Shown here one piece after another: positions 66 through 33,227 of a stretch of DNA of 64,000 nt. The stretch comes from Azolla caroliniana (lineage: Eukaryota; Plantae; Polypodiophyta). Where the stretch lies: contig JBHGNT010000021.1 in assembly GCA_043228905.1 (NCBI GenBank), positions 2,480,001 to 2,544,000 of the forward strand. Reading direction: 5' to 3'. The notes beneath the pieces were generated by a model, which was not told where the DNA came from, did no database searches, and worked only from the letters and a program-made list of their open reading frames with translations. Each line of letters opens with the position of its first letter. Within the stretch, counting starts at the first letter, position 1. Made by a program: the position numbers and the translations under genes.

Positions 66-1019
66 TTAGACGTGAACATTAATATATATCAATTTGAACA
101 TATCAACAGTTGTCAGGATATCCACACTGCTTTCCACTTCTTCCTTTTGAGAACTCCCTAACAAAATTTGTGAAGTAGTATCTACTCCATATAGGCTGGC
201 AATGATAGGGTCCTCAAATAGCTCGTTGACAAAATCAATAAGCTCCCTAGGTTCACCAACTAATGGAGGAATAAGTTCATGGGATGCAGATTGAAAATGT
301 TAAGGCTTTAATCCTCATGTTAATGAAACTCACTTGCTCATCATCCTTTTTAAGTGCAATTGTATTTCTGAATAACTCCAATGCAGATGCAGATGCAGTA
401 CACATGAACAATTTAAAATGCGGATTGATTTAGCTAAACATAAACTATATTGATTTCTAAAGGCATAACAAACAAAGTTATAATAATTTACCTGAGCCAA
501 AGAACAAATCTAGTATCCAATCTCCTTCATTGGAAAACATTTCAAATGACAAAAATCAATATTATGTAGAATATATTGATGGGAAAATTAAAATTCTCCA
601 TGTAAGATAAATATTCCTTACTAAGCAAGGTTTTCTATCCCATTGCAATGAGATCTCAAGGCCTGTGCTATAGACTATCCTTGGTCCATGCTATGGAATA
701 TGACAATTCTCCATAAGGATATTTCCTGTGCAAAATCTTTCATCATCTTCTCAAGTTGTTTGAACATAAATGGTTCATCATCATATGTTGATCCAACCAT
801 ACAAAAATCCGTATGGTATGTCAACAATCAATAATATGTATTTCTTCGTTAGCAATATGTGTATCATCTCAACCACATCACCATAATAGACATTATAGTA
901 TAAATCCCGGGTGATATCCTTTTTGTGGCTAAATTTCTTAAAAGTGTCACTATCTTCTACACCTGGATATGCTTTCACTAAACGATAGTCCTTTTCTTTC
1001 CCCATTCTTTCAAGATGTG
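66..1019 (-). pseudogene. Decayed intron-containing beta-class DNA amino-methyltransferase (N6_N4_Mtase-like), 5'-truncated
   Basis: Manual minus-strand translation gives VYYGDVVEMIHILLTKKYILLIVDIPYG (motif IV, DPPY-like DIPY at 811-822). After a frameshift it reads GSTYDDEPFMFKQLEKMMKDFAQ..WRIVIFHS, then FEMFSNEGDWILDLFFGSG (motif I, FxGxG, about 491-546). A GT donor at 491 opens a ~90-bp intron, followed by TASASALELFRNTIALKKDDEQVSFINMRIKAL. Motif IV precedes motif I, the beta-class order. It carries stops, frameshifts and a damaged acceptor. Confidence 0.8.
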
Positions 1020-4000
1020 TCAACAGACGACGCTTATGTAGTACAAGGTTCGACAGACCGATCGAACATACGAGGAAGAGATTCCTCACGGCCGCCGAAT
1101 AGTCAGCGAAGACGGAGCCAGTCACGGGATAACCGAATCTGCAACTATTGCAAGAAACCCGGACACATCAAAGCCGACTGCCGCGCACTCAAGAACAAGA
1201 ACAACAAGAAGAGTGGCCGGCATGAGGAGATCAATTACGTCAGCTTCTCAGCTGATGTGCTACCAGACGACCCGAATATACTATCAATCGAAAATCCAGT
1301 CGGATCAGAAGTTCTACTCACGACTGAAGAGTCGAGCACATGGCTCTTAGATTCGGGCGCGTCATTTCACGTGACTCCTCATCGATCCCAATTTCGGCAA
1401 TATACGATCCGTCACTCCGACTCAGTTCGAGTCGGTAACTCGCAACACTGTGACATCATCGGAATCGGCACAGTAGAGCTCAACCTTGCAGGTGGCTCTA
1501 CACTTGTACTCCACAATGTCCGACATGTACCCGAGCTCTCAAGGCCATTGATCTCAGTCGGACAACTAGATGAAGACGGCATTCGTGCCGGTTTTTCTTC
1601 GGGAGGGTGGACACTCCACAGGGGGAACCTCCTGCTTGCTAGAGGACCCAAGATACACTCCCTGTATCCGTTACATGTTACGCTCAGAGAGGGTAACCTG
1701 TTTTTGGTGGATATTCCTGTGTCATCACTATGGCACAGAAGATTAGGACACCTCAGCAAGGCCGGCATCACGCATCTATCTAGAGCCGGATACATCCCCA
1801 AACTCTCCTTCTCCGACCATCAATTCTGCGAGCATTGCCAGTATGGCAAACAAGCAGCCGCATCACACCCGACATCAGCACCAAGAGAAACGAGACCTCT
1901 CGATTTGGTCCACTCGGACGTCTGTGGCCCGATGCCGCATCAGTCTCTTGGCGGTGCCTCTTACTTCGTCAGTTTTATTGACGATTCGACTCGAAAGGTG
2001 TGGGCTTATCCAATTCGCACCAAAGATCGTGTCTTCTCGATCTTCTCCGATTGGCTCGCTATGGTAGAAAATCAAACTGACCAAAAACTGAAATGCCTTC
2101 GGACAGACAATGGGGGAGAGTTCAAATCAGAAGAATTCGTCAAATTCTGCCGACAACGCGGCATCCGACGTGAATTTACGGCACCACACAGTCCGGAGCA
2201 AAACGGGATTGCAGAACGAATGAATCGGACAATCCAAGAACGGATAGTTTCCATGCTCCAACACTCCGGACTGTCGGATGGCTTCTGGGCAGAGGCTCTA
2301 CTCACGGCAGTACACATAATCAATATGTCGCCAAGTAGACCTCTAGGACTTCAAATTCCTCAGGAACGATGGATCGGCAGTAAGCCGAATTACGACAAGC
2401 TGAGGATCTTCGGATGCGAGGCGTACGCCCTTATTCCGAAAGATGATCGCCGAAAACTTGCACCTCGGTCCAGGAAATGCATTTTCCTTGGATATGGATC
2501 CGACGGCGAAATGGGATACCGACTCTGGGATCCCGAACGCAGACAAATCGTCCGAAGTTCGGACGTTGTGTTCAACGAGTCGGCTATGAATCCATCAGTC
2601 GAAAAACCGATCGAAGTCCGAAGGGTAACATTTTCCGATGTGCCGACCCTTCAAGAAGGCCCCGCTCTCAACACACGGGTAGCTGAACCTTACACTACCG
2701 ACTCGGACAACTCCGACTCGGCACAGCAGAACAATCCGCTTTCGGACCATCCGACCTTGATACCCGATGCGACCAGTCCAATCATACCTCGACGATCCGA
2801 GAGACTGTCGCAACCTCCGGAGAGGTATTCTCCTGGAATTTTCTTCACCGACGCCGGCGAACCGACGTCTTACGAAGAAGCATCGACATCTGTCGATTCC
2901 GTCACCTGGCATCTGGCGATGGAGTCGGAAATGCACTCCATTCGGGCAAACAAGACTTGGGATCTGGTCGAATTACCTAGGAACCGACGTGCTCTTCCTT
3001 GCAAGTGGGTTTATCGACTAAAAGAGACGTATGATTCGACCACCCCAAAGTACAAGGCCAGATTAGTTGCGAAGGGCTTCCGACAAGAATATGGCGTCGA
3101 CTTCGACGAGATTTTTTCACCAGTGGTGAAAATGACAACCCTTCGTTTTCTACTCGGCGTAGTGGCAGCCGACAACTTGGAGCTGATTCAGCTAGATGTC
3201 AAAACAGCCTTCCTCCATGGTGATCTCGAGGAGGAAATTTATATGGAGCAGCCAAAAGGCTTCGTGGCACCTGGCCAAGAACATCTAGTCTGCCGACTCA
3301 GGAAGAGTCTATACGGCCTCAAACAGGCACCGCGACAATGGTACAAGAAGTTCGACGACTTCATCCAATCGATCGGCTTCTCCAAAAGCGATGAGGACCA
3401 TTGTCTCTTCACCAACACAGCTCAAGATGGATCACCCATCTTCCTCATCATTTACGTGGACGACATGCTAATTTCTGGACGCCACGCGGGCGAACTTGCC
3501 GATCTCGTTCGGCAACTGCGGTTGAAGTTTGCCATGAAGGACCTCGGTCCGGCACGACACATCCTTGGCATGAAGATTAGTCGGCATCGCGATAAACGAC
3601 ATCTTTTTTTGTCTCAGACCGACTATATCGGACGTGTCTTGGAACGCTTCAACATGCAATCAGCCAAATCTGCTTCAACCCCGCTCCCAATGAATCTTCG
3701 GCTCTCTCAGCGAGACTGCCCGACATCCGGCCCGGAGGGGGAAGATATGAAGTCGGTACCGTATGCACCGGCAGTCGGCTCCCTTATGTACCTGATGGTC
3801 GCGACACGGCCTGATATTTCTCATGCCGTAGGAGTCGTTAGCAGATTTATGCACAATCCTGGCCGATCGCATTGGAACGCAGTCAAGCATGTGTTCAGAT
3901 ATCTGGCTGGCACAAAAGACCATGGCATTCTTTTCGGTCCGAACCGAACCTCAGGCGTAGTCGGTTACACCGACTCGGACTTCGCCGGCTGTATAGACAG

Positions 4001-4436
4001 TCGAAAATCAACAACCGGATACTGCTTCAAATTCGGCAATGGAGCAATCTCGTGGAAGTCGAAACTTCAGGAGTGCACAGCGACCTCAACGACCGAAGCA
4101 GAATATGTAGCTGCGTCCGACGCAGCAAAAGAAGCTTTGTGGCTCGGTCGGCTGGCGCACACGTTTCGACAAGTCGACCATGACTCGGCTCCAGTTGTCT
4201 ATAGCGACAGTCAAGGTGCTGTTGCCTTGTCGAAAAATCCGGTTCACCACAACGCCTCCAAACATATCGACGTTCGATATCACTTCGTTCGGGACTGCGT
4301 CATTTCAGGGAAAATCGGTCTAGAGAAAATATCCACAACCGACAATGTCGCAGATGGAATGACCAAGTGTCTTTCGGCAGACCGCTTTCGGTCTCTTCGG
4401 CATCAGATGGGCGTAACGACAAACCAGTCCGGTTAG
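1020..4436 (+). CDS. Copia polyprotein lacking its N-terminus (Zn knuckle, protease, integrase, RT, RNase H)
   Basis: Motifs CNYCKKPGHIKADC, WLLDSGAS, integrase HSDVCG/RTDNGGEF/AERMN, RT YVDD and RNase H SKHIDVRYHFVRD, in copia domain order. The frame is open, but the ATG at 969 lies outside the element. Confidence 0.9.
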   Translation, partial: STDDAYVVQGSTDRSNIRGRDSSRPPNSQRRRSQSRDNRICNYCKKPGHIKADCRALKNKNNKKSGRHEEINYVSFSADVLPDDPNILSIENPVGSEVLLTTEESSTWLLDSGASFHVTPHRSQFRQYTIRHSDSVRVGNSQHCDIIGIGTVELNLAGGSTLVLHNVRHVPELSRPLISVGQLDEDGIRAGFSSGGWTLHRGNLLLARGPKIHSLYPLHVTLREGNLFLVDIPVSSLWHRRLGHLSKAGITHLSRAGYIPKLSFSDHQFCEHCQYGKQAAASHPTSAPRETRPLDLVHSDVCGPMPHQSLGGASYFVSFIDDSTRKVWAYPIRTKDRVFSIFSDWLAMVENQTDQKLKCLRTDNGGEFKSEEFVKFCRQRGIRREFTAPHSPEQNGIAERMNRTIQERIVSMLQHSGLSDGFWAEALLTAVHIINMSPSRPLGLQIPQERWIGSKPNYDKLRIFGCEAYALIPKDDRRKLAPRSRKCIFLGYGSDGEMGYRLWDPERRQIVRSSDVVFNESAMNPSVEKPIEVRRVTFSDVPTLQEGPALNTRVAEPYTTDSDNSDSAQQNNPLSDHPTLIPDATSPIIPRRSERLSQPPERYSPGIFFTDAGEPTSYEEASTSVDSVTWHLAMESEMHSIRANKTWDLVELPRNRRALPCKWVYRLKETYDSTTPKYKARLVAKGFRQEYGVDFDEIFSPVVKMTTLRFLLGVVAADNLELIQLDVKTAFLHGDLEEEIYMEQPKGFVAPGQEHLVCRLRKSLYGLKQAPRQWYKKFDDFIQSIGFSKSDEDHCLFTNTAQDGSPIFLIIYVDDMLISGRHAGELADLVRQLRLKFAMKDLGPARHILGMKISRHRDKRHLFLSQTDYIGRVLERFNMQSAKSASTPLPMNLRLSQRDCPTSGPEGEDMKSVPYAPAVGSLMYLMVATRPDISHAVGVVSRFMHNPGRSHWNAVKHVFRYLAGTKDHGILFGPNRTSGVVGYTDSDFAGCIDSRKSTTGYCFKFGNGAISWKSKLQECTATSTTEAEYVAASDAAKEALWLGRLAHTFRQVDHDSAPVVYSDSQGAVALSKNPVHHNASKHIDVRYHFVRDCVISGKIGLEKISTTDNVADGMTKCLSADRFRSLRHQMGVTTNQSG

Positions 4437-4629
4437 AGCCGGACACAGCGCAGGATGGTTCCCGACAACCGACATCAGTTCCTCAATGATCGGCTTCAAC
4501 TGTTCCGACCCGACCAGTTCGGTCTTCTGCCTTCGGACCCTGCCGACTCGAACAAAGCTGATATGTCCGAGAACCTAAGTCTATACCTGTAATCTTAGAT
4601 AACCCATGTATACGCCCATTACGGGGGAG

Positions 4630-4795
4630 TGTCGAATACAAGTGTATAATGGACGTATTCACACTATCCCTTTAGGCCATTTGTGTAATTATCATAAAGG
4701 GTAGTTGCCCTAAGTCGGTCACTATATATAGTGACCTTGTAACCTTTTTGTAAGGTTGGGTGTTGTATTATTGCTTTGTGGAATAAGAAGTCTTT

Positions 4796-4844
<49 letters not shown>

Positions 4845-4928
4845 ACGACCTACAATCTGTCATACACAGGTATTCAACAAGAATCGAATGCTTCTTGATC
4901 TTCCGCATAGACGACCTCGTCTCCAACA
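4630..4928 (+). repeat. Copia A 3' LTR
   Basis: TGTCGAATAC...CTCCAACA directly after the PPT; contains a (TC)n tract and a palindromic TATA region. Confidence 0.95.
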
Positions 4929-4950
4929 CCGTCTCCAACACCGTCGTCAA

Positions 4951-5452
4951 TGCACACGGTTGTGACGAAAGTTTCCCATGATGAGGGAAGGCTACTCATG
5001 AGTATCATTGCTCTGAGTTCATCCTCGATTGCCGTCCCCTGTGACGAGATTTGGGAGCTTATGCTTTCGTACTCATTTAGGTGTGCTTGAACCGAGTCGG
5101 ATTCTTTCATCCGCAAGTTGTAGAGGCGCCGGATCAGAAACATCTTTGTTGCGGCGACCTTCTTTTCGTTAGTGTCCGACAGTGTTTTCCATAGTTCGAA
5201 TGCTGTCGTACACGATTGCACCGTAAAGTATACCGATTCCGATAGGTGCATCCGAATCGTGGCGCGGACGATTCTGTCCAGCTTCTGCCACTCAATTGGT
5301 TTGTATCCTTCTGGAGGTTCTTCATTTTCGATGGGATCGATTTGCCCCTTGACTATGAGATAGTCCTGCATTTGTTCCTTCCAGAAGTTGAAGTTCGATC
5401 CATCGAACTTGCGTAGACTCATTTCTGACGAGCCGGATGTTGATGCCATCAA
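4951..5452 (-). pseudogene. Copia gag N-terminal fragment, separated from pol by the inversion
   Basis: MMASTSGSSEMSLRKFDGSNFNFWKEQMQDYL...ETFVTTVC matches the N-terminus of ORFs 19176-22703 and 33992-35563. Confidence 0.9.
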
Positions 5453-6132
5453 ATTTGGTTTCGGTTGACGGAGCTCGGTTCGGAGTTGACTACGAACCTT
5501 GTTGGAGTGCAGCCGGTTGGCTCACCCGATATCGTTCTAGTCGGATTTGAACCCGAGTCGGTTCGGCTTCGGAACTTGCTCGAATTGACTCCGGTAGCTT
5601 GAGGGACAGAACCGACTGGTCTTCCCGAATGTTGCCGAGTCGGAGTGAGCCCGGTTCGCTTCGGATATATATATGCCGAATACCGATTATTGAAACCGAT
5701 TATCTGGACCGATTCTGCTTCGGGTGGCTGCAGCGACGAGAGAGACAGATTCAACTGATCCTCCCGAATGTCGATCAGCCGGATGAAGCGCGAATTGGGG
5801 TTGTTGTCTTGAGACCGATCTGCACCGAGTGGTTACAACGAGCGGCGAGCAGCGTTTAATGACCTTTTCGGATGTTGTTTAACCGAGTGGAGCACGATCG
5901 TGTCAATGTTGCACAAGGGGATTTCACCTCGGGCGGTTACGATCACAAGGAACAGAGTACAACCTGCTGGCTTACTCCAAGCGAAGATGATCTAACGCGA
6001 TGAGATGCAAGCCTCGTTTTTCTTCTTCTTCTCTCTTCTTCGAATGACGCAAGAAACCGAATGCTGTGCAGGCTGAGACGACGGCCGACAGCGGGATGAA
6101 GGACCGAATACTGTGCAGGCTCTGATACCAGA

Positions 6133-6216
6133 TGTTGGAGACGAGGTCGTCTATGCGGAAGATCAAGAAGCATTCGATTCTTGTTGAATACCTGCGTATG
6201 ACAGATTGTAGGTCGT

Positions 6217-6262
<46 letters not shown>

Positions 6263-6439
6263 ACACACACACAAAAGACTTCTTATTCCACAAAGCAATA
6301 ATACAACACCCAACCTTACAAAAAGGTTACAAGGTCACTATATATAGTGACCGACTTAGGGCAACTACCCTTTATGATAATTACACAAATGGCCTAAAGG
6401 GATAGTGTGAATACGTCCATTATACACTTGTATTCGACA
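6133..6439 (-). repeat. Copia A 5' LTR
   Basis: Reverse complement of the LTR at 33003-33311, adjacent to PBS TGGTATCAGAGCC on the minus strand; outer flank AACGG. Confidence 0.95.
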
Positions 6440-8815
6440 AACGGTTTGACGTACGCGCGCGTCAAGAGCCAAGACAGTCGCCATTCCGTCCAGTTCATGA
6501 CCGTACGTCCGAACCATGAGAGGAATCGCGAGACCCTCGGCGGCGACAGCCGAGGGGATTTTTAGAGAGGGCTATCAAGGCGTGGGGCCGCGGTAGTCCG
6601 GACGTACCAGAAGAACCCCACACATGTAGAGTAGGTAGGAAGTTTTGGTTCTCCGAAAACGGAGGTTGTACTATAGTCGGCGTTAGCGGCCGGGAGAGGA
6701 AGCGAGCGGAGGAGCGGCTCAGGGGATGCGGAGTCCTCTCCCCCAACGAAGAAATTAGCGGCGCCGTGGAGGCGGTCTCTTTTGACGACACCTTGGGCGA
6801 GTTGCGAAAGGTGATCGGTGAAGACCTTAGAGAAGACCGGATTGTTCCGGTTAGTTCGATGGGAATGTACGAAGTCATCGCAGACTTCGGGGAAAGGGTC
6901 AGGTCGGATCAGACGGCCCGCGTGGATACAAAGTACAAGACTGTGGACCGGAAGGTGAGGCCAGTCGTGGCACCCTTGCCGGAGGGCAGCGAGGAGTGGA
7001 TAAAAAGGGTCGCGTCGAACCCAAGTTTACGAAATCCGGCTAGCATAGGGCACCGGTTCACCGACATAACGCTACGGGAGCTCAAGGTCGGTGATGGTGG
7101 CTTTCTACTGCCGGTGGAGGAGGATAGGTTTCGGAGAATGCTCGGAAGGCATGGGAAAGCCTTCGCGTTCTCGCCGGAGGAGATCGGGTGCGTGGACCCG
7201 ACGATCGTCGAACCGATGGTGATCTTCACGGTACCGCATGTACTGTGGAATCTCAAACTGATTATGGTGCTGAGAGCTCACATCCCGAAGTTGATGGAGC
7301 TTCTGAAGCAAAAGGTGGAGATGGGCATCCTTAAACCGTCGAGTGCCCCATATTCGAATCGGTGGTTTACGGTGCCGAAGAAGAACGTCACGTTGTGCTT
7401 CATTCAGGACCTGCAACCGGTCAACAGGGTGACCATCCGTAATGCAAGGATCAGACCGACCATAGAGGAGTTCGCAAAGGCCTTCGTTGGAAGATCGATC
7501 TATTCGGTCGGTGACTTATACTCAGGGTACGACCAGTTCCAGCTAGCCGTGGAGAGCAGGGATATCACGACGATGCGAACTCCTCTCGGCCTAGTACGGA
7601 TGTGTACCCTACCGCAAGTCGGGACGAATTCGGTGGCGCATATGGTGAACGTAATGAACAAGGTGCTGAGGGACTGCATCCCAGACATCACCATGCCATT
7701 CTTGGACGACATCCCGATAAAGGGGTGTCCGGTGGAAGATGCGAACGAGACTGTCGGGCCAGACGGATGCTGGAGGTTCGTCGTGAACCACATCAACGAC
7801 TGCAAGAAGGTGCTGCAGAGGCTCGAGAGCACACGACTCACCTTCTCCAGAGAAAAATCGGCATTCGGGCAGTCGGAGATCTTGGTGGTCGGACACCTGT
7901 GCGGGCCTTACAGTAGGAAACCATCTCCGGCAAAGGTAGATGCCATCTCCGCGATGAGGAATGATTGCGGGTCGGTTACGGAGGTCCGCAGATTCTTGGG
8001 TGCATGCGCGTTGTCGTGAAGAAAACCGTCCATAGGCGGAATCGGCGCACCAAGGCGTGGGAACCGGTTCTTCACGCGCGCACGCTCCGAGTTGTACATA
8101 GAAACGAATTGAGAGGATAATCGGCAGGAACGGGCCCTAACTCAAGTGGAGACAAAGACCGCGCGAACAGTCTTTTCGGTCGCGCGCGCGAACTGTACGA
8201 GTCGGCGGCGTAACTACGCGGATCCGTGAAAAACGGAGCGGATCCCTGTCCAAAAGGGACAGGGAATAAAGCTGACACGACGGCCTGTTCGTCGGCCTAT
8301 ATAAGGAGCGGGAAAGAGCTGTTGCAGGGATCTGGCGCGGAGAGGACGAAGTGCTGTCGGACCGTTTCTGGACGCTTCGCTCTCTCTGTTTCCTTCCTTC
8401 TTGAGCTCCAAAGCTTTCTGTGCAGGGTTCCGGGGAGGCTCGCGCTGTTTCGAGGAACGCCCGAGTGCTTCCGGCAGCACCTCCGACCTGCTACCCCCCC
8501 CCCATTTCCCCATTTGTGCGTCGAAGCGAACAGGCATCGGCATCTGTTCGCCGGCCTGTGCGGTTGCAACCAACCTGTGCCCCATCGGGGGTTGTAGTCG
8601 TGTTAGCCATTTTGTTAATACACATATTTAGTCATTCGCATCCGTCTGTGTCGGTGTCTGTTCGCGTTCTCCGTGCTGAAGGGCCGTGTCCCTGTGTATC
8701 CCCGGTCCTGCGTAGCCGGTTCTCTCTCTTTCTCCTCCCTCGCTTGCTCTTTGGTTCGAGACCCCCGCGGTCCCGCCTCTATTCCACACGCACTTGCGTA
8801 ATATCTCGACATCTT

Positions 8816-8833
8816 TGGTGAACCCGACGTGAA
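8816..8833 (+). promoter_or_regulatory. Primer-binding site complementary to the 3' end of plant cytosolic tRNA-Trp
   Basis: TGGTGAACCCGACGTGAA is the reverse complement of TTCACGTCGGGTTCACCA, which I recall as the plant tRNA-Trp(CCA) 3' end. The same PBS occurs at 28035-28052 and, with one mismatch, at 40839-40856 (-). Confidence 0.85.
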
Positions 8834-8855
8834 AGAGGCGGCAGAAGAGCAGAAG

Positions 8856-10982
8856 ATGAGGGGGTCGGATCTCGCAGAGGCCATGGCTTCGGCCGTGGAT
8901 CGGATCGTAAACGCGCGCGAGGGTACCGGTGCCCTCGACAGAGCTATTGAGGCGGTCGTCGGCACGATCGGCCGGTTCGATGGGAGGGATGCCACGAAGT
9001 ATCTGGCGTCCTACGGTGCAGAAATGTTGATGCGGGACATTCCGGAAGAAAGGCGTCTTGCCGGTTTTCCCCGAGTGGCAATGCCGAGCATCCATGCGGA
9101 GGTGCTCGAGGTGCGGGCGGAGAGCCGTACCTAGGAGGAGTTCGAAGGTCGGCTCCTAGAGAAATACGGGCTGGACGACGCGCTCCGGCTTTCGAAGCGA
9201 AGGTTCATGGAATGGGTGGAGTCCCCGGGGAAGGGAAGAAACGCGTCGGCACTCCTCCGGGAGTTCGAGGAAAACTTTGCGCGCCTTTCGGCGCTCGACC
9301 GAACCATCCTGGACACGAGCCGGGTCTTGCTGTTTGTCAAGTCGGTCGACGAGCGGGATCGGGAGCAAGTGGGCCTCTTGCTGGAAACCGAAGACGGGCT
9401 CACTACCGACTGGGCGGCTGTCAGGAAGGTCTGTGGCCGTTTCGACAAACGGCGAGAATGGGCGGATAACGGGGCGACTGGGTCGGGCTCGGTCGCAGCA
9501 AGGAAGCTCGAACCAGCGCCACAGGTGCGCAAGGAAGAGACCCGGGAGTGGTTGGAAACCGGTTCGGCTTCGACCGGCGTAGTCAGAGGCTCAACCGGAG
9601 GAGCGGCGCTGGAGGAATTGACGAAGGCGATAAAGGACCTCCAAATCGCGCAGGCCCGAAGGGAAGGAGGCGAACCGGCTCGTGACCGACGGCCGGCGGC
9701 AGGAAACAGGTGCATGTGGTGCGATGAAGTCGGCCACGTTCGGAAGGACTGCGGCGACTTCGCGGAGGCGCTGAGGGACCGGGTGGTGTACCTGTGGGAA
9801 GGACGGGTGCATGCCAGCGACACCCGAAGGGCCCTGAGCCGAAACGACGGAAAGGGTGGTATGAAAAGGTTGATGGAAGAGGCGGCGGCCCGACACGCGG
9901 AAACCGTCCACTACTCGGCGTCGGCCGGCATTCGAGTCGGGGGCGGCGAGGCCCGAAAGGAAAGCAAAGCCGGATTCTGGCCGACGATGCTGGAAGGCCT
10001 TGCCGGTGCAGGGCTTAAAAGGGAGGAATCGGACCGTGCGGAGAAACGGGTACGGGAGATGACCGGGTGGAGCGACCCGGTCGAGGAAAGGACGGGCTTC
10101 GTGGAAGCCGCTTGCCGGAACTACGAGGCTCTGGTAGAAGAGAAGCGGGTGGGAAAACCCGGGACGACCGGGCCCTCACAACGATACGAGACCCGGTCCG
10201 GGCCACGACGGGACGAAGCCGGCAGGGCCGGTACGCAAGATAAACCCCAGAAGGGCGGGTACCGTCTGGGGACGGAGATAGAAAGAACCACGGACTTACG
10301 AAAGGTCCTGGAGGAACGGATCCTCGACAGCAAGGTGGAGCTGTCGCTACGGGAGGTGCTTGGAATCGCCAAGAAGGAGTTCCACGACTCCATCGTGGAC
10401 TTGGTGAAACGGAAGAGGCTGTCAACGGAGACAGAACCGGAAAGACCGGTGGAAGTGCGGACGACGCACCTAGACGACATGGCGCTGGGAGACGAGTGGG
10501 CGGAAAGCCACTATTCGAGACCGCACTGGGCCCGAGCGACCACGGAAACCCCGGTGAAGATCGGCGATGTCCAGGAACCGGTGATAGCTTTGGTGGACCA
10601 CGGATCGGAGATCAATTTGATGTCCATGGACTTCTATAAGAAGGGCAAATGGCCGATCAACACCAAGCACGGGTGGAAAATAAGGGCAGCAACGCGCGCC
10701 ACCGAGGAACTGCACGGGGCCTGTCCGAATGTGCGAGTCAAGATCGGCGACGTCGAGATTGACCAGCACTTCTTCGTGCAGGAGACGTCTTCGCATCCGG
10801 TCATACTGGGAGAGCCGTACATCACGGCGGCGCGAATGGAGACCAAGGTGCTGGACAATGGTTCGGCCTATGCGCGGGTCAAGAGCCAGGACGGCCGCCA
10901 TTCGGTCCAGTTTTTGACGGTTAGGCCGAACCACGAGCGTAACCGCGACTCCCTCGGTTCCGATAACCGAGAGGATTTTTAG
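8856..10982 (+). CDS. Element B Gag-protease ORF with one in-frame TAG at 9132-9134
   Basis: ORFs 8829-9134 and 9207-10982 share a frame. Contains the CMWCDEVGHVRKDC knuckle and the ALVDHGSEIN protease motif. The stop replaces a TGG (Trp) that is present in elements C and D. Confidence 0.85.
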
Positions 10983-13900
10983 AGAGGGCTGCCAAGGCGT
11001 GGGGCCGCGACAGTCCGGACACCCCGGGAAAACCCCACACCTGTACGATAAAACCGAAGAAACCTTGTACCATAGGTAGGGAATTTTTGTTCTCCGACAA
11101 CGGAGCGTGTGCGATGGTCGGCATCGCCGGCCGAGAGAAAACAAAGACGGAGGCGAGACTTCGAGCGTGCGGAGTTCTCGGCCCGGACGAGGAAATCAAC
11201 GGAGCCGTGGAGGCGGTCTCATTCGACGACACCTTGGGAATGCTGGGAAAGGTAGTCGAAGAAGGCCTTAACGACGACCGGACGATACCGGTGTGTTCCG
11301 AGGAGATGTACGAAGTCATCGCGGACTTCGGTCGAGGGCTCGAGTCAGTTCGGACGGCCCATGTAAACACCAAGTACAAGACTGTGGACCGGAAGGTAAG
11401 GCCAGTAGCGGCACCCTTACCGGAGGACAGCGCGTCGAGAATCAAAGGGGTTGCATCAGACCCTAGTCTACGAGATCCGGCCTGCATAGGGCACACCTTC
11501 ACTGACGAGACGCTCCGAGAGCTCAAAATCGGTGGGGGCGGGTTCCTACTGCCGACGGAGGAAGACCGGTTTCGGAGAATGCTCGGAAGGCACGGGAAAG
11601 CCTTCGCATTCTCGCCGGAGGAAATCGGGTGCGTTGACCCGACGATCGTGGAGCCGATGGTGATATTCACGGTACCGCATGTACCATGGAATCTCAAGCC
11701 AATCCCGGTTCCGAGAGCTCACATCCCGAAGTTGATGGAGCTGCTGAGGCAGAAAGTTGATATGGGAATTCTCGAGCCGTCGAGCGCCCCATATTCGAAT
11801 CGATGGTTTACCGTACCGAAGAAAAACGGTTCGCTGCGCTTCATCCAGGACCTGCAGCCGGTCAATCGAGTGACCATTCGGAACGCAGGAATCGGACCGA
11901 CCATAGACGAGTTCGCGGAGGCCTTCGCCGGAAGGTCAATTTACTCGGTCGGGGATCTATACTCAGGGTACGACCAGTTCCAGCTGGCCGTGGAGAGCAG
12001 AGACCTTACGACGATGCGAACTCCCCTCGGCCTAGTTCGGATGTGTACACTGCCGCAAGGAGGGACCAACTCGGTGGCCCACATGGTGAATGCGATGAAC
12101 AAGGTTCTGAGGGACTGTGTCCCGGACATTACCATGCCGTTTCTGGACGACATCCCGATCAAGGGATGCCCGGTGGAAGAAAAGGACGAGACGATCGGGC
12201 TGGACGGATGCCGGCGATTCGTGGCGACGCACGTCGACGACTGCGAGAAGGTGCTGCAAAGGCTAGAGGATGCGAGACTCACCTTCTCCGGGGAGAAGTC
12301 GGCCTTCGGGCAGTCAGAAATCATGGTGGTCGGACACCTGTGCGGACCATATGGCCGGAAACCGTCTCCGGCGAAGGTAGAAGCCATCTCCGCGATGAAG
12401 CCCGACTGCAGCTCGGTCACGGAAGTACGGAGATTCCTGGGGGCATGCGCGTTCTACCACATATGGATCCCGCATTACGCACACGTCGCGGAGCCACTGT
12501 ACGGGTTGCTGAAAAAGGGGCGAAGGTTCGAATGGCTAGACAAGCACGCGGAATCGGTCCGGAAGCTGAAAGAGGCCCTTGCAGCGGCACCGGCACTCCG
12601 GAAGGCGGTTTACGGGAAGGGTACCCCGGTATTCATAACGGTGGATACCAGTCCGACCGGGATCGGATGGGTCGTGAACCAGGAAGACGAGGACGGCAAT
12701 CGGTTTCCGATCCGATTCGGCGCGAAAGTCCTCAGTGAACGGCAGCGAGGGTACGCCCAGGTTAAACGCGAACTCTGGGGTATTGTTTCGGCGGTTAAGG
12801 CCGACAAAGACTACCTGATAGGGACGGAAGTGATCATCGAGACGGATTGCCTGCCGATTCTCGGTATGGTTTCCGGATGCGCGACTCCGGACCTGGCGAT
12901 GCTCAGGTGGATAGCGTACATCAAGTCCCTGGACCCGGAAATACGACACATTTCCGGGAAAGACAACGCCATGGCCGACATGCTTTCGAGGGCGAGGTTC
13001 GACGACGAGGGCGGCATGGTTTCGGAAGACGAAGAAGTCGGCGTGGATTTCTTCGAGGCGGCATACATAACGACCGACGGGATGAGCACTCCGGCGCTTA
13101 ACGAGTTCGACGCGAGCAAGTACGACGGGGAATGGCTGCAGATCGGCGGGTTTTTGAAGACGATGACGCCCGATGCGTCATGGACGAAGGACGAGGCCAA
13201 CCGGATCCGGAAGAAAGCATATCGATTCTTTCTCCGAGATGGGCATCTATGGAAGCACCCGAAGAAGAGGGACGGCGTCCCGCTCCGAGTGGTGGCGATG
13301 AAGGAAGAACAGGAGGAGCTACTGGCGGCCTACCACGACAGCCCTTGGGCTGGACACCGTGGAACGTGGGCGACGTTTGAGAAGCTGAAGGGAAAGTACT
13401 GGTGGCCGGGATTGTACCGGGACGTGCATCGGTTCGTGTCAACTTGCGAGAGTTGTCAGATGCACTCGATAGTCCGACACCGGGACGGGCTTCACCCTAC
13501 GTACCCTCCGACTATCCACTTCAAATGGATGGTAGATCTGGTGACGATGCCGATGGGGGTAGGACAGATGCGGTATCTGGTCCTAGCGCGGGAAGACCTG
13601 ACGAACCAGGTGGAAGGCCGAGCCCTTCAGAACAAGACGACCGCGGCCGTGTGTCGGTTCCTAGTCGAGGACGTGATATGCCGGTACGGGTGCGTCGGGA
13701 AGATCGTGGCTGACCGAGGGGAGTTGGACGCCGAAGAGGCCGCGGAGCTGTTCGACCGGCTTGGAGTCAAGCTCTCGCTCACCACTGCGTACAATCCGGA
13801 GGCGAATGGAAAGGTGGAGCGCGGACACGGACCGATCGTCAAGGCGTTGATTCGGGCATGCGGAGGCCAAGTCGGTAACTGGCCGCGGCTGCTACCTTAT

Positions 13901-14470
13901 GCTTTGTGGGCAGACCGGACCACGCACAGTTCGGTAACCGGGTACATGCCGACGGAGCTCATGTTCGGCCAGAAGCCGATCATGCCGATTGAACGGACGA
14001 TCTCCTCGTGGGCAACGGTCGACTGGAGGGACGAGATGAGCCGGGAGGAGTTGTTGGTCGCACGTATACGACAGCTCGAGCGGAGGCCGGAGGACGTGGC
14101 ACTGGCTACGGAGAAGCTCCGGGTGGCGAGGACAAAGAACAAAGCCCGGTTCGACCGAACGCACCGGCTACGACCGAAGAAAATCGAAGAAGGTGACTGG
14201 GTGCTCGTCTACGACAGCAGCCTCGACAACCAGCACCGAGCCACACGGAAGTTCGCACGAAGGTGGTTCGGGCCTTACGTGGTACGGAGCGCCAATGACA
14301 ACGGGACATATCACCTGGCGGAACTTGACGGCACGAGAATGGCGATACCGGTTGCAGGGAAGCGGATCAAAGCGTTCAAGAAGCGACACGACGACGAGCC
14401 AGACCCGGCTCTCCTGGTCGGCAGTGACGAACGATCCGAAAATGAAGAAGAACCGACGGGCGAGGAATGA
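10973..14470 (+). CDS. Element B Pol (RT, RNase H, integrase) in the -1 frame
   Basis: The frame is open from GGATTTT at 10973. RT LPQG/FLDD, RNase H TVDTS/ETDC, integrase HHCC and DDE, and a WFGPY motif; no chromodomain. Confidence 0.92.
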   Translation, partial: GFLERAAKAWGRDSPDTPGKPHTCTIKPKKPCTIGREFLFSDNGACAMVGIAGREKTKTEARLRACGVLGPDEEINGAVEAVSFDDTLGMLGKVVEEGLNDDRTIPVCSEEMYEVIADFGRGLESVRTAHVNTKYKTVDRKVRPVAAPLPEDSASRIKGVASDPSLRDPACIGHTFTDETLRELKIGGGGFLLPTEEDRFRRMLGRHGKAFAFSPEEIGCVDPTIVEPMVIFTVPHVPWNLKPIPVPRAHIPKLMELLRQKVDMGILEPSSAPYSNRWFTVPKKNGSLRFIQDLQPVNRVTIRNAGIGPTIDEFAEAFAGRSIYSVGDLYSGYDQFQLAVESRDLTTMRTPLGLVRMCTLPQGGTNSVAHMVNAMNKVLRDCVPDITMPFLDDIPIKGCPVEEKDETIGLDGCRRFVATHVDDCEKVLQRLEDARLTFSGEKSAFGQSEIMVVGHLCGPYGRKPSPAKVEAISAMKPDCSSVTEVRRFLGACAFYHIWIPHYAHVAEPLYGLLKKGRRFEWLDKHAESVRKLKEALAAAPALRKAVYGKGTPVFITVDTSPTGIGWVVNQEDEDGNRFPIRFGAKVLSERQRGYAQVKRELWGIVSAVKADKDYLIGTEVIIETDCLPILGMVSGCATPDLAMLRWIAYIKSLDPEIRHISGKDNAMADMLSRARFDDEGGMVSEDEEVGVDFFEAAYITTDGMSTPALNEFDASKYDGEWLQIGGFLKTMTPDASWTKDEANRIRKKAYRFFLRDGHLWKHPKKRDGVPLRVVAMKEEQEELLAAYHDSPWAGHRGTWATFEKLKGKYWWPGLYRDVHRFVSTCESCQMHSIVRHRDGLHPTYPPTIHFKWMVDLVTMPMGVGQMRYLVLAREDLTNQVEGRALQNKTTAAVCRFLVEDVICRYGCVGKIVADRGELDAEEAAELFDRLGVKLSLTTAYNPEANGKVERGHGPIVKALIRACGGQVGNWPRLLPYALWADRTTHSSVTGYMPTELMFGQKPIMPIERTISSWATVDWRDEMSREELLVARIRQLERRPEDVALATEKLRVARTKNKARFDRTHRLRPKKIEEGDWVLVYDSSLDNQHRATRKFARRWFGPYVVRSANDNGTYHLAELDGTRMAIPVAGKRIKAFKKRHDDEPDPALLVGSDERSENEEEPTGEE

Positions 14471-15348
14471 AGACGGGCCGGTTTTCTCCGTCCCAACTCT
14501 CTTGGCGCATACCGGAGGATGCGCGGTTAGGTGGGGGCGGATGTCGTGAAGAAAACCGTCCATAGGCGGAATCGGCGCACCAAGGCGTGGGAACCGGTTC
14601 TTCACGCGCGCACGCTCCGAGTTGTACATAGAAACGAATTGAGAGGATAATCGGCAGGAACGGGCCCTAACTCAAGTGGAGACAAAGACCGCGCGAACAG
14701 TCTTTTCGGTCGCGCGCGCGAACTGTACGAGTCGGCGGCGTAACTACGCGGATCCGTGAAAAACGGAGCGGATCCCTGTCCAAAAGGGACAGGGAATAAA
14801 GCTGACACGACGGCCTGTTCGTCGGCCTATATAAGGAGCGGGAAAGAGCTGTTGCAGGGATCTGGCGCGGAGAGGACGAAGTGCTGTCGGACCGTTTCTG
14901 GACGCTTCGCTCTCTCTGTTTCCTTCCTTCTTGAGCTCCAAAGCTTTCTGTGCAGGGTTCCGGGGAGGCTCGCGCTGTTTCGAGGAACGCCCGAGTGCTT
15001 CCGGCAGCACCTCCGACCTGCTACCCCCCCCCCATTTCCCCGTTTGTGCGTCGAAGCGAACAGGCATCGGCATCTGTTCGCCGGCCTGTGCGGTTGCAAC
15101 CAACCTGTGCCCCATCGGGGGTTGTAGTCGTGTTAGCCATTTTGTTAATACACATATTTAGTCATTCGCATCCGTCTGTGTCGGTGTCTGTTCGCGTTCT
15201 CCGTGCTGAAGGGCCGTGTCCCTGTGTATCCCCGGTCCTGCGTAGCCGGTTCTCTCTCTTTCTCCTCCCTCGCTTGCTCTTTGGTTCGAGACCCCCGCGG
15301 TCCCGCCTCTATTCCACACGCACTTGCGTAATATCTCGACAGCGTTCT

Positions 15349-15904
15349 CCAAAGATGTCACGAAGTTTCGCGAGTACATGTAGATCCTAGGCGGGACCAC
15401 GGGGGTCTTGGACTAGGGAGAAGAGGATAAAGGTACAAATGGAAGATTAGCTCAAGAGGAGAAGAGAACGAATATGACATTATGATAGAAGAAGAAGAAG
15501 ATGGAGTCAAGATACTCAACAAGAAGTTCTATTAAGAAATGAATGATTACAATAATCGTGGCCGCATAGGCCACACCCCACGATATATGAAACCGTAAGC
15601 GAATTAGTAGGAAGAAGAAGAATAAGAAAACCCTAAGCGAACCCTAACCCTAAAACGAAATGGGAAGAAGGAGAACCCTAGACTAAGTGGTATACCACAC
15701 TCACACTCAAAATTAGGCAACCCCTTCATAAGTGACCCCTCCCTTCCTTTTATAGCCCAAGGAGGGAGGGACCTTACAATGTGGGATAAAATTTCCCCTC
15801 TTATCTCTATACACCATTTCCTAGTATACATGTGCACATGGTGCACACCACCGATTTGCCTATTCCACCCCGGTTTCCGCCTATGGACGAAAATCTTCAC
15901 AACA
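15349..15904 (-). mobile_element. Lone gypsy LTR F (15356-15904) retaining a spacer/PBS stub
   Basis: Homologous to the LTR at 40901-41426, with TG..CA ends. It is followed on its own strand by TCTTTGG, identical to element B's spacer plus PBS start. Flanked by GCGT(TCT). Confidence 0.85.
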
Positions 15905-18587
15905 GCGTTCTACCACATCTGGATCCCGCACTACGCACATGTCGCGGAACCCCTCTACGGACTATTGAAAGGGGGGCGTAGCTTTGAGTGGAGGACGGAG
16001 CACACGGAGTCAGTCCGGAGACTAAAGGAGGCGCTTACGGTAGCGCCAGCTCTCCATAAAGCAGTTTACGGCAAGGGAGTCCCCATCTACATGATGGTGG
16101 ACACGAGCCCGACTGGGATCGGGTGGGTGATCAACCAGGAGGACGAGGACGGCATACAGTTCCCGATCCGGTTCGGGGCGAAGGTATTGAGCAAGCGGCA
16201 GCGAGGATACGCCCAAGTCAACCGCGAACTATGGGGTATCGTTTCGGCAGTCAAGGCCGACAGGGACTACCTGATTGGGACGGAGGTAATTATCGAGACG
16301 GACTGTCTGCCGATACTCGGCATGGTTTCTGGATGCGCGACGCCGGACCTAGCAATGCTCCGGTGGATAGCGTACATTAAGTCCCTGAACCCGGAGATAC
16401 GGCACATCTCCGGAAAGGATAACGCCATGGCTGACATGCTTTCGAGAGCGAGGTTCAAGGACAAAGACAGCATGGTTTCGGATGACGAAGAAGTCGGCGA
16501 GGACTTCTTCGGGTCAGCTAACGTGACGACGAAGAAAGGGGACACTCCCGCGCTTAACGAATTCGACGAAAGCATGTATGACGGGGAGTGGCTCCAAATC
16601 GGGAGGTTCCTACGGGCGATGACGTCGGACACAACGTGGACGAGAGAAGAGGCAAGCCGGTTACGGAAGAAGGCGTACCGATTCTTCCTACAGGACGGGT
16701 GCCTATGGAGGCACCCAAAGAAAAGAAACGGCATCCCACTCCGAGTAGTGGTAAAGAAAGAAGAACATGAGGAATTACTGGCGGCATTTCACGAGAGTTC
16801 CTGGGCCGGGGACCGCGGAACGTGGGCCACATTCGAGAAGTTGAAGAAGAAGTACTGGTGGTCAGGGTTGTACCGGGACGTGCATCGGTTCGTAACGACT
16901 TGCGAAAGCTGTAAGATGCACTCCGTAGTCCGATATCGGGATGAGCTACACCCGACCTACCCTCCTACGGTCCATTTCAAGTGGATGGTGGACTTGGTGA
17001 CGATGTCGATGGGAGTAGGACAGATGCGATACCTGGTGCTTGCGCGGGAAGACTTAACGAACCAGGTGGAAGGTCGTGCACTACAGAACAAGACAACCGC
17101 AGCGGTATGCCGGTTCCTGATCGAAGAGGTGGTGTGTCAGTACGGGTGCGTCAGGAGGATCGTGGCGGACCGGGGAGAGCTGGATGTGCCGGAAGTTGAG
17201 GAGTTGTTCGACCGGCTAGGGGTCAAACTCTCCCTCACTACGACGTAAAATCCGGAGGCGAACGGGAAGGTAGAACATGGGCACGGGCCGATCGTAAAGG
17301 CGTTGGTGCATGCATGCGGAGGGCAGATCGGGAATTGGTCGCGGCTCCTTCCTTACGCACTATGGGCGGACCGAACTACGCACAATTCGGTGACAAGGTT
17401 TATGCCGGCGGAGCTGATGTATGGACAGAAGTTGATCATGTTGGTGGAACAGACGGTTTCTTCGTGGGCGGCGGTAGATTGGAAGGACGAGATGAGCCGG
17501 GAGGAGTTGTTGGCGGCGCGAATTCAGCAACTCAAGTGGAGGTCGGAGGACATGAGACAGGTGAAGGAAAAGCTACGGCCGGCAAGGGAGCGGAACAAGA
17601 CCCGGTTCAATCGGACGCACCGGTTGCGACCAAAGAAGGTCGAGGAAGGCGACTGGGTCTTGGTATACGAAAGCAGCCTTGACAATCAGCACAAGGCGGT
17701 GCGAAAGTTCGCCAGGAGATGGTTCGGGCCCTACACGGTGACGAGTGCGAACGACAACGGCACGTACCACCTCACGGAACTCGACGGGACACAGTTAGCA
17801 GTACCGGTGGCCAGGAAGCGGATCAAAGCGTTCAAGAAGCGGTTCGAAGACGAGCCGGAGCCGGCGAGCGAGAGCGACGACGATGATCGGTTTGGGCCCG
17901 GCGAAGAATCGGAGACCGACGAGTGAAGCCGGTTTTCTTCGGTATCTACCCGTCTCTGGCGCATGCTGGTGGATGTGCGGTTTAGTGGGGGTGGATGTCG
18001 TGAAGAAAACCGGCCATAGGCAAAATTGGAGAAGAAGGCGCATGAACCGGCTCTTACATAGGCGGACGCGAGAATTGATATTGTGGACATAATTCATAAT
18101 TAGGTCGGCTGATGTAAATACTAGGTAGTACACATTTATTAGGGGATTTGTGTGTATCTCTATCGAAAGGGACATGGAATAAAGCGATTTGACTAGGGAA
18201 GAAGGGTCTCCCCTTGGCGAACTATTTTGAGGGAGAGAAGCAAGAAAAGGGATCGCGCGTTGGCAAGGACGAAGTGTTGTTGCAGAACCGACGGCCGAGC
18301 TCTCTCTCTTCTGATCGTCGTTCGCTTCCAGCAGAGGCTCTCTCTCTCTCTCTTCTCCCCCCCCCCCCCCCTTTTTTTGTTTCTTCGAGTCATGTGGCTG
18401 TCGTTTGTGTGCGTGAGTAGGACCCCGTGTCAGCTCCATTACCGGGTTGCCGGTTGTAACTGTTCGAGTTGTAAGCTACTGATCATAGTAATCGGATTCC
18501 TGTTTCTTGCTCTTATTTTCTTTCTGTGTATGTGCAACTCTCTCTCTCTCTCACTCTCTCCTTGGTCCAAGACCCCCGTGGTCCCGC

Positions 18588-18671
18588 TGTTGGAGACGAG
18601 GTCGTCAATGCGGAAGATCAAGAAGCATTCGATTCTTGTTGAATACCTGCGTATGACAGATTGTAGGTCGT

Positions 18672-18735
<64 letters not shown>

Positions 18736-21700
18736 ACACACACAAGACTTCTTATTCCACAAAGAGACAATACAACACCCAACCTTACGAAAAGGTTACA
18801 AGGTCACTATATATAGTGACCGACTTAGGGCAACTACCCTTTATGATAATTACACAAATGGCCTAAAGGGATAGTGTGAATACGTCCATTATACACTTGT
18901 ATTCGACACTCCCCCGTAATGGGCGTATACATGGGTTATCTAAGATTACAGGTATAGACTTAGGTTCTCGGACATATCAGCTTTGTTCGAGATGGGAGGG
19001 TCCGAAGGCAGAAGACCGAACTGGTCGGGTCGGAACAGTTGAAGCCGATCATTGAGGAACTGATGTCGGTTGTCGGGAACCATCCTGCGTTGTGTCCGGC
19101 TCTAACCGGACTGGTTTGTCGTTACGCCCATCTGATGCCGAAGAGACCGAAAGCGGTCTGCCGAAAGACACTTGGTCATTCCATGGTTCGGTTCGGACCG
19201 AAAAGAATGCCATGGTCTTTTGTGCCAGCCAGATATCTGAACACATGCTTGACTGCGTTCCAATGCGATCGGCCAGGATTGTGCATAAATCTGCTAACGA
19301 CTCCTACGGCATGAGATATATCAGGCCGTGTCGCGACCATCAGGTACATAAGGGAGCCGACTGCCGGTGCATACGGTACCGACTTCATATCTTCCCCCTC
19401 CGGGCCGGATGTCGGGCAGTCTCGCTGAGAGAGCCGAAGATTCATTGGGAGCGGGGTTGAAGCAGATTTGGCTGATTGCATGTTGAAGCGTTCCAAGACA
19501 CGTCCGATATAGTCGGTCTGAGACAAAAAAAGATGTCGTTTATCGCGATGCCGACTAATCTTCATGCCAAGGATGTGTCGTGCCGGACCGAGGTCCTTCA
19601 TGGCAAACTTCAACCGCAGTTGCCGAACGAGATCGGCAAGTTCGCCCGCGTGGCGTCCAGAAATTAGCATGTCGTCCACGTAAATGATGAGGAAGATGGG
19701 TGATCCATCTTGAGCTGTGTTGGTGAAGAGACAATGGTCCTCATCGCTTTTGGAGAAGCCGATCGATTGGATGAAGTCGTCGAACTTCTTGTACCATTGT
19801 CGCGGTGCCTGTTTGAGGCCGTATAGACTCTTCCTGAGTCGGCAGACTAGATGTTCTTGGCCAGGTGCCACGAAGCCTTTTGGCTGCTCCATATAAATTT
19901 CCTCCTCGAGATCACCATGGAGGAAGGCTGTTTTGACATCTAGCTGAATCAGCTCCAAGTTGTCGGCTGCCACTACGCCGAGTAGAAAACGAAGGGTTGT
20001 CATTTTCACCACTGGTGAAAAAATCTCGTCGAAGTCGACGCCATATTCTTGTCGGAAGCCCTTCGCAACTAATCTGGCCTTGTACTTTGGGGTGGTCGAA
20101 TCATACGTCTCTTTTAGTCGATAAACCCACTTGCAAGGAAGAGCACGTCGGTTCCTAGGTAATTCGACCAGATCCCAAGTCTTGTTTGCCCGAATGGAGT
20201 GCATTTCCGACTCCATCGCCAGATGCCAGGTGACGGAATCGACAGATGTCGATGCTTCTTCGTAAGACGTCGGTTCGCCGGCGTCGGTGAAGAAAATTCC
20301 AGGAGAATACCTCTCCGGAGGTTGCGACAGTCTCTCGGATCGTCGAGGTATGATTGGACTGGTCGCATCGGGTATCAAGGTCGGATGGTCCGAAAGCGGA
20401 TTGTTCTGCTGTGCCGAGTCGGAGTTGTCCGAGTCGGTAGTGTAAGGTTCAGCTACCCGTGTGTTGAGAGCGGGGCCTTCTTGAAGGGTCGGCACATCGG
20501 AAAATGTTACCCTTCGGACTTCGATCGGTTTTTCGACTGATGGATTCATAGCCGACTCGTTGAACACAACGTCCGAACTTCGGACGATTTGTCTGCGTTC
20601 GGGATCCCAGAGTCGGTATCCCATTTCGCCGTCGGATCCATATCCAAGGAAAATGCATTTCCTGGACCGAGGTGCAAGTTTTCGGCGATCATCTTTCGGA
20701 ATAAGGGCGTACGCCTCGCATCCGAAGATCCTCAGCTTGTCGTAATTCGGCTTACTGCCGATCCATCGTTCCTGAGGAATTTGAAGTCCTAGAGGTCTAC
20801 TTGGCGACATATTGATTATGTGTACTGCCGTGAGTAGAGCCTCTGCCCAGAAGCCATCCGACAGTCCGGAGTGTTGGAGCATGGAAACTATCCGTTCTTG
20901 GATTGTCCGATTCATTCGTTCTGCAATCCCGTTTTGCTCCGGACTGTGTGGTGCCGTAAATTCACGTCGGATGCCGCGTTGTCGGCAGAATTTGACGAAT
21001 TCTTCTGATTTGAACTCTCCCCCATTGTCTGTCCGAAGGCATTTCAGTTTTTGGTCAGTTTGATTTTCTACCATAGCGAGCCAATCGGAGAAGATCGAGA
21101 AGACACGATCTTTGGTGCGAATTGGATAAGCCCACACCTTTCGAGTCGAATCGTCAATAAAACTGACGAAGTAAGAGGCACCGCCAAGAGACTGATGCGG
21201 CATCGGGCCACAGACGTCCGAGTGGACCAAATCGAGAGGTCTCGTTTCTCTTGGTGCTGATGTCGGGTGTGATGCGGCTGCTTGTTTGCCATACTGGCAA
21301 TGCTCGCAGAATTGATGGTCGGAGAAGGAGAGTTTGGGGATGTATCCGGCTCTAGATAGATGCGTGATGCCGGCCTTGCTGAGGTGTCCTAATCTTCTGT
21401 GCCATAGTGATGACACAGGAATATCCACCAAAAACAGGTTACCCTCTCTGAGCGTAACATGTAACGGATACAGGGAGTGTATCTTGGGTCCTCTAGCAAG
21501 CAGGAGGTTCCCCCTGTGGAGTGTCCACCCTCCCGAAGAAAAACCGGCACGAATGCCGTCTTCATCTAGTTGTCCGACTGAGATCAATGGCCTTGAGAGC
21601 TCGGGTACATGTCGGACATTGTGGAGTACAAGTGTAGAGCCACCTGCAAGGTTGAGCTCTACTGTGCCGATTCCGATGATGTCACAGTGTTGCGAGTTAC

Positions 21701-27114: not shown

Positions 27115-28070
27115 GGACCCACCTTCTCCCGATCCTACGCATCCACGGACTTGATGAAGAGCAGGACACGGCTCGTGCCGAGCACGATCCTGTCCAACGC
27201 CGAGAGATGAGCAAACCGTTTCTCGAACTCCCAGAGGAACACCGACATGTTCCTCCCCTTTCCGGGGCTTTCGACCCATTCCATAAATTTTCGTTTCAAT
27301 AACTAAAGTTAGTCCTCGAACACGTCGTCATAGTGTATTCCACACACTACGTGAAAACCATAAAATAATATATCCGATTTTAGATACATATAACTAGATA
27401 AATAATATATCAAAAGAATTTATCACGTGCATAGGGCAAGATTCGAACCATGCACCTCCACATAGATAAACCCCAACTTTACCATTGTAATAACTTATCT
27501 TTAGTGTTATAAATATAGATTTAATACGTATAAGACCTTTATTTACACATACCTTTATTAAAAGGTAAAAATCATGTATTCTTTAGAGTGTGAATATTTT
27601 ATTTACACGTGACATTAAAAGTGACTCATGCACATCTAGCGTGCATGAGCCCTATATTTAGGAAATGACAAAGCATCACATGCACATTTAGTGTGCATGG
27701 ACACTTTAGGTGAAAAAGCATGAAGTCATGCTTAGCCTCTTCCATCTTTATATAAGGAGGAGAGAAATATGTATATGGTTGTTGATTAATATACAAGGAT
27801 TGATCAATCTAATATATTCGTGGGATTCACGAATTTTGCCATCTAAATTACTCTTATAATCTAAATATTGTTTTAATTACACTAAACTTGTGGGATTCAC
27901 GAGATTCCTATCTTACTTCTCTTCCTATTATTCATAACTAGCCTTAAGTTGTATTCCTCTTCCTCCTAGTCCAAAACCTCGGCGGTTCCCACCCGACTCA
28001 CGCAACGATCCGGAACCGAAAGGCTCGACACAGTTGGTGAACCCGACGTGAAGCACCGGGTGGCAAGGAG

Positions 28071-33002: not shown

Positions 33003-33179
33003 TGTCGAATACAAGTGTATAATGGACGTATTCACACTATCCCTTTAGGCCATTTGTGTAATTATCATAAAGGGTAGTTGCCCTAAGTCGGTCACTATAT
33101 ATAGTGACCTTGTAACCTTTTTGTAAGGTTGGGTGTTGTATTATTGCTTTGTGGAATAAGAAGTCTTTTGTGTGTGTGT

Positions 33180-33227
<48 letters not shown>

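Follow-up and report, generated by a model that had tools for sequence, protein, structure and literature searches.

The first kilobase of a stretch of 64,000 nucleotides from the fern Azolla caroliniana (contig JBHGNT010000021.1, positions 2,480,001 to 2,544,000; the whole stretch is called the window here) raises the question of how pieces of a gene resembling a bacterial DNA methyltransferase came to lie beside a retrotransposon in a plant genome. A sequence-only reading of positions 66 to 1019 had described a broken, spliced methyltransferase gene and had speculated that it belonged to a transposon-borne or multicopy family. The stretch is very probably the non-functional fossil of a passenger gene carried by a cut-and-paste DNA transposon family of ferns, a reading that draws on observed homology, the architecture of the family, the pattern of selection and the distribution of shared and private lesions. 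Nothing at this locus can work, and the locus itself is junk DNA, an ordinary dead fragment.

A three-frame reading of positions 1-1100 recovers all of the peptides quoted earlier, on the minus strand of 66-1019 and in the order quoted. The remnant of exon A (622-1019, minus strand), truncated at its 5' end at 1019, encodes the N-terminal half of the methyltransferase domain with motif IV. It reads YYGDV...LLIVDIPYGF and, after a change of frame by one nucleotide, GSTYDDEPF...WRIVIFHSMDQG; a TAG stop at 675-677 follows, then ...ALRSHCNGIENL and a GT donor at 620-621. Its defects comprise an extra T near 803, which causes the frameshift, the TAG stop and a 9-nt in-frame deletion. Motif IV (811-822, minus strand) is DIPY in place of DPPY or SPPY. 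The remnant of intron 1 (544-621, minus strand) runs from that donor to the junction of a deletion of approximately 300 bp, which, as judged by alignment, stripped exon B of its target-recognition part and of NPYQKP. What survives of exon B, EMFSNEGDWILDLFFGSG (492-543, minus strand), carries motif I, FFGSG (490-504, minus strand), downstream of DIPY, and this is the beta order that the sequence-only reading had proposed. The intron of about 90 bp reported there corresponds to intron 2 (402-491, minus strand), which measures 90 nt and keeps its GT donor at 490-491; its acceptor has changed from AG to GT at 402-403. Exon C opens with TASASALELFRN ... INMRIKAL (301-401, minus strand) and continues as a C-terminal tail (66-300, minus strand) that is out of frame after a 56-nt deletion, is 52% identical to the tail of the better-kept relative L013 and ends at a stop codon at 66-68. 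The window begins about 65 bp past this stop codon, and no second methyltransferase piece is present elsewhere in the window.

The window exons were searched separately, with natural gene models from Ginkgo as the full-length references. A 24-aa piece around motif I matches profile positions 176-194 of PF01555 (N6_N4_Mtase) with an E-value of 2.4e-4 and 21.5 bits, below the gathering score of 26.7 bits. Better-kept relatives lie above this cut-off. Exon B of L013 scores 43 bits (E 6.7e-11, profile positions 71-199), natural ORFs reading through intron 2 match up to profile position 219, and the Ginkgo models Gb_10123 and Gb_37443, which have the same upstream domain together with PF01555, reach 66-69 bits (P0059, 68.9; P0068, 65.7). 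The proposed membership of this bacterial-type family therefore stands, with relatives at 43-69 bits, and the match of the relic itself, as judged from sequence comparison, is far beyond chance. Exon A alone gave no Pfam match, either with the window pieces or with eight exon-A homologues, and no sequence match in the PDB with a 27-sequence profile; its AF2 model was poor (pLDDT 61), Foldseek against the PDB returned noise, and an Atlas look-up yielded PF01555 leads only.

Among solved structures, the best matches of the family are CcrM (6pbd), M.RsrI (1eg2), M.MboIIA (1g60) and DpnA (5hek), with E-values of 1e-7 to 1e-5. In common with these beta-class N6-adenine enzymes, the family has the motif order IV, target-recognition region, xPxQKP, FxGxG, and its C-terminal half aligns with them at E ~1e-7; the target-recognition region and xPxQKP, present in the family, are deleted in the window copy. 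The Ginkgo counterpart of YYGDV...DIPYGF aligns weakly and collinearly with IHGDC...DPPYN of CcrM, and also with the DPPY region of M.RsrI. DIPY is retained in approximately 31 of 43 copies, NPYQKP in 17 of 23 and (L/M)DLFSGTG in 15 of 21, and motif I of the relatives reads FSGTG or FSGSG. On profile and motif evidence, the family belongs with the beta-class DNA amino-methyltransferases of PF01555. Matches to N4-cytosine enzymes are far worse (E 2e-3 for 8s9m and 0.74 for M.PvuII, versus 1e-7 for N6-adenine enzymes), which is suggestive, and only that, of 6mA rather than 4mC as the product. The family departs from the bacterial and phage N6-adenine enzymes in its introns, its eukaryotic host, its fusion to a ParB-like domain and its DIPY (DIPH or DISQ in Ginkgo models) where they have DPPY. 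In the window and in most copies, the first proline of the (D/N/S)PP(Y/F/W) consensus is replaced by isoleucine and, since DIPY is non-canonical, enzyme activity of the intact copies is putative. At motif IV, the Ginkgo models P0068 (Gb_37443) and P0069 (Gb_17912) have DIPH and DISQ, with NPYQKP and FSGSGTT kept; judging by these residues, catalysis may have been lost, or decay may be under way, in the Ginkgo copies.

Relatives of the relic are numerous. A 79-aa piece found 32 relatives among 1.84 billion representative proteins (phmmer, best E 1.7e-20), all of them ORFs the size of an exon (47-155 aa) from short ENA contigs, and their clusters were all singletons. With tblastn, the same piece led to 44 loci on metagenome contigs, up to 9.4 kb long (best E 1e-34), in a scan that used a nine-sequence alignment. 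Several of these contigs have a k-mer coverage of 30-362x against ~2x for others, as expected of collapsed repeats. In DNA, the window is 92.6% identical to L005 (over 720 bp), 87% to L007, 81% to L045 and approximately 75% to intact copies. Moreover, DNA runs of two organisms yield short contigs that together cover 1-1019 completely, in many variants, and the relic's family is thus multicopy in those two organisms; the Ty1/copia part next to the relic is 10-100 times deeper than the relic in the DNA runs. One presumed-RNA run contained pieces over the exonic parts, with ends that also look unspliced. Gene models exist for family relatives in Ginkgo and Ceratopteris, and a search with the methyltransferase part of Ginkgo matched Ginkgo proteins only.

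The better-kept relatives reveal the gene from which the relic is broken. In L021, L014, L013, L008 and others it has five coding parts, namely a first exon of ~555 aa, a small exon (HKVYMKIQ...), exon A, exon B, which consists of the target-recognition part, NPYQKP and FSNEGDWILDLFSGTG, and exon C. Intron positions are common to diverged copies, as befits the spliced eukaryotic gene that had been postulated, and L013 and L047 retain GT..AG in intron 2. In relatives L021 and L014, this gene sits in a DNA transposon bounded by terminal inverted repeats (TIRs). L021 has a perfect 26-bp TIR at 1-26 and 8595-8620, and its homology to L008 stops at ~8630, indicating an element of about 8.6 kb. On the opposite strand, L021 and L014 have an ORF of 829-916 aa that matches PF25273 (DUF7869) with E 2e-53. 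Relatives of this ORF occur in Ceratopteris, Adiantum and the liverwort Riccia, and in Atlas clusters from streptophytes, oomycetes and echinoderms; no paper mentioning DUF7869 turned up in the literature searched. The earlier suggestion of a transposon-borne or multicopy family is borne out by the 44 loci and by relatives that lie between TIRs with this transposase-like ORF. The window shows no TIRs, palindromes, ParB exon or transposase for its own copy, and the transposon origin of the relic rests on homology to these relatives, because its upstream part has been replaced by the copia element and the window begins so near its stop codon.

Upstream of the gene, 10 loci carry an array of a 23-bp palindrome, AACTCGATAC-N3-GTATCGAGTT, which was absent from shuffled sequences and from the window. 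The arrays lie at 673-1021 in L013, 3687-3999 in L021, 165-259 in L008, 27-112 in L017, 34-209 in L018, 117-364 in L029 and 462-606 in L022, with palindromes spaced ~32-41 bp apart and always upstream of the ParB-methyltransferase gene; the DUF7869 ORF lies beyond the array on the other strand, and the gene faces away from it. Subfamilies that cannot otherwise be aligned in their intergenic DNA still have the array in common. By sequence, the upstream exon gave ~14 bits to DUF6551 only in Pfam and no matches in the PDB with phmmer or a 12-sequence profile. Its AF2 model, built from 12 homologues, has a pLDDT of 79, and the top Foldseek matches of this model are all ParB, Noc, KorB, Spo0J or sulfiredoxin (E 2e-5, probability 1.0). 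At the level of the predicted fold, the upstream domain of the family gene is confirmed as ParB-like, and Ginkgo gene models join it to PF01555. The palindrome array is a candidate docking site for this domain, which the window copy does not have. No paper linking ParB to ferns was found in the literature searched.

The family protein has been kept by strong purifying selection over a long time. Among intact copies, the median pairwise NG86 dN/dS is 0.04 for exon A (28 pairs), 0.02 for exon B and 0.15 for exon C, and dS is mostly >1. The deleted sub-lineage that includes the window copy evolves neutrally (dN/dS ~1), with values of 0.6-2.3 internally and 0.06-0.2 against L013. Its lesions are partly held in common. 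The deletion of ~300 bp, which took what remained of intron 1 and ~80 codons from the start of exon B, is common to the window, L005, L007 and L045 and absent from L047 and L013; the 56-nt deletion after RIKAL is common to the window, L007 and L045; and the AG acceptor of intron 2 is lost in the window, L005, L007 and L045. L047 retains everything lost through these three lesions. Two further lesions, the extra T near 803 and the TAG at 675-677, are confined to the window copy or rare, and in public DNA runs most other copies have G at 675 and many have no base at 803. The copy is broken, as the sequence-only reading had it, by a private frameshift and stop on top of shared deletions. In L005, L022 and L001, exon A follows directly on the opening ~50 codons of the first coding exon, the small exon and the entire ParB-like domain having been lost, and L022 retains the family palindromes ~600 bp upstream. 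In L022, some 300 bp of upstream sequence are also duplicated in inverted orientation (1-280 versus 608-1207). Taken as sequence evidence, the lesion pattern is typical of non-autonomous transposon derivatives that arise by internal deletion and decay neutrally. The window copy very probably descends from such an internally deleted, probably non-autonomous derivative, itself catalytically dead before the window copy arose because the target-recognition region and NPYQKP had already been lost, and then acquired its frameshift and stop.

Other origins have to be weighed against this descent. The relic could be a decayed paralogue of a host, non-mobile methyltransferase gene that was acquired horizontally and served a cellular role, in the manner of Marchantia DN4MT1 or rotifer N4CMT. 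Conserved introns and strong purifying selection in the relatives are what such a gene would have, and gene models in Ginkgo and Ceratopteris could be taken in the same way. Nevertheless, the relatives are bounded by TIRs and neighbour a transposase-like ORF, each assembly contains many diverged copies, with coverage of up to 362x versus ~2x, and the deletions of the sub-lineage are typical of non-autonomous transposon derivatives. Motif IV is, moreover, DIPY and not the TSPPY of the Marchantia enzyme DN4MT1, and a host origin is quite improbable. Chance resemblance, or kinship with an RNA or protein methyltransferase family, could appeal to the window pieces, which alone fall under the Pfam gathering score, but the relatives exceed the PF01555 cut-off and every one of their best matches among solved structures is a DNA N6-adenine or N4-cytosine methyltransferase, so that its probability is close to nil.

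A further reading accepts the methyltransferase and disputes its route, holding that a gene fragment was captured by an unrelated transposon (Pack-type) or moved by segmental duplication, and is not a deletion derivative of the parent element. No element ends are visible for the sub-lineage, and the similarity of L007 to L005 breaks off some 72 bp upstream of exon A, as a capture might leave them. It is difficult to reconcile capture with the first ~50 codons of the first coding exon retained in fusion with exon A in L005, L022 and L001, or with the family palindromes ~600 bp upstream in L022, both of which are predicted by internal deletion of the parent element, and capture is accordingly highly improbable.

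The closest published system to the deleted transposon derivative favoured here is that of Sola1-1_Ec32, a 21.5-kb element of Ectocarpus in which a gene of 1104 aa, combining a ParB-like domain with an N4C/N6A methyltransferase, lies opposite the transposase (PMC12477816). Passages of the same paper cite similar proteins for green and red algal transposons (Iyer, Abhiman & Aravind 2011; Petroll et al. 2025), and clades of ParB-linked methyltransferases in algae and chytrids were described by Iyer et al. (PMC4738411). The fern relatives resemble Sola1-1_Ec32 in architecture, having a ParB-like domain fused to a PF01555-type methyltransferase in a gene opposite the transposase strand and inside a DNA transposon. 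They differ from it in their land-plant host, in the size of the element (~8.6 kb versus 21.5 kb) and in coding exons that total several hundred residues below the 1104 aa of Ectocarpus, and the window copy differs further in being a damaged methyltransferase remnant alone. The family is a land-plant member of the transposon-borne ParB-methyltransferase design already published for brown, green and red algae. DN4MT1a/b of Marchantia and N4CMT of bdelloid rotifers are likewise bacterial-type amino-methyltransferases in eukaryotic genomes; unlike the transposon-borne, multicopy family described here, these eukaryotic 4mC writers are host genes, and DN4MT1 carries the catalytic motif TSPPY, as opposed to DIPY.

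The relic therefore adds a data point on eukaryotic transposons bearing a ParB-methyltransferase of bacterial or phage type, from an old family, present in many copies and strongly constrained by purifying selection in fern-like genomes, that has relatives in Ginkgo and also yields deletion derivatives which decay neutrally. In intact copies, the ParB-like part might dock on the palindrome array and the methyltransferase might mark the element's own DNA with 6mA or 4mC, a proposal already made for the algal transposons (PMC12477816), and deleted derivatives might be mobilised in trans. That the family is an active self-marking land-plant transposon, with ParB on its own palindromes, a fused enzyme writing 6mA or 4mC and deleted derivatives, such as this sub-lineage, that retain palindromes and are both marked and moved in trans, is a tentative and rather doubtful proposition. 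If true, self-marking could help the element to escape or steer host silencing, and ferns would have a transposon-encoded DNA methylation system other than 5mC. An active intact enzyme would be a transposon-encoded writer of 6mA or 4mC in land plants, and would call for caution in reading 6mA or 4mC signals in fern genomes.

The missing 5' end of the relic, which the sequence-only reading had placed at position 1020, is accounted for by its neighbour. Across 1019|1020 the GC content passes from 0.34 to 0.50, rising at ~1000-1050, and from 1020 the sequence belongs to a Ty1/copia retrotransposon (1020-4928, plus strand; RVT_2, rve and gag_pre-integrs) whose ragged 5' end adjoins the relic. This element stands next to the relic without its first ~1.58 kb and has its 3' LTR at 4630-4928. 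Full Ty1/copia copies lie at 33003-38484 and at ~18585-23672 (minus strand), and from 1020 onward the element next to the relic matches internal parts of both at 99% identity. Since these copies extend ~1.58 kb further 5', an ordinary LTR insertion does not explain the junction, at which exon A of the relic is joined illegitimately to a point inside the copia element. Exon A of the relatives runs further upstream (...KKPxEVKDIHDFPTSFLA before HLER), and the relic has thus been cut inside an exon. The join to the 5'-truncated element would have removed everything upstream of the codon 'HLER'. No contig bridging 1019|1020 was found in four public runs (short contigs), and the junction rests on the assembly only.

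The first 1.49 kb of the same copia element, including its 5' LTR, is found inverted at 4951-6439, 22 bp past the 3' LTR, with ~86 bp missing at the break. This arrangement suggests inversion or template switching, and not simple truncation. An inversion carrying the methyltransferase gene on into the 22 bp at 4929-4950 was considered and rejected, as these 22 bp, when translated, do not carry the exon on. Pfam gave no match for the ORFs at 28071-30113 (680 aa), 38315-39229 and 53888-54604. Nested with the copia copies, at 6440-17250 and 28000-33020, are several polyproteins of Ty3/gypsy type (RVT_1, RNase H, Integrase_H2C2), and LTR retrotransposons make up almost all of the window's first 40 kb.
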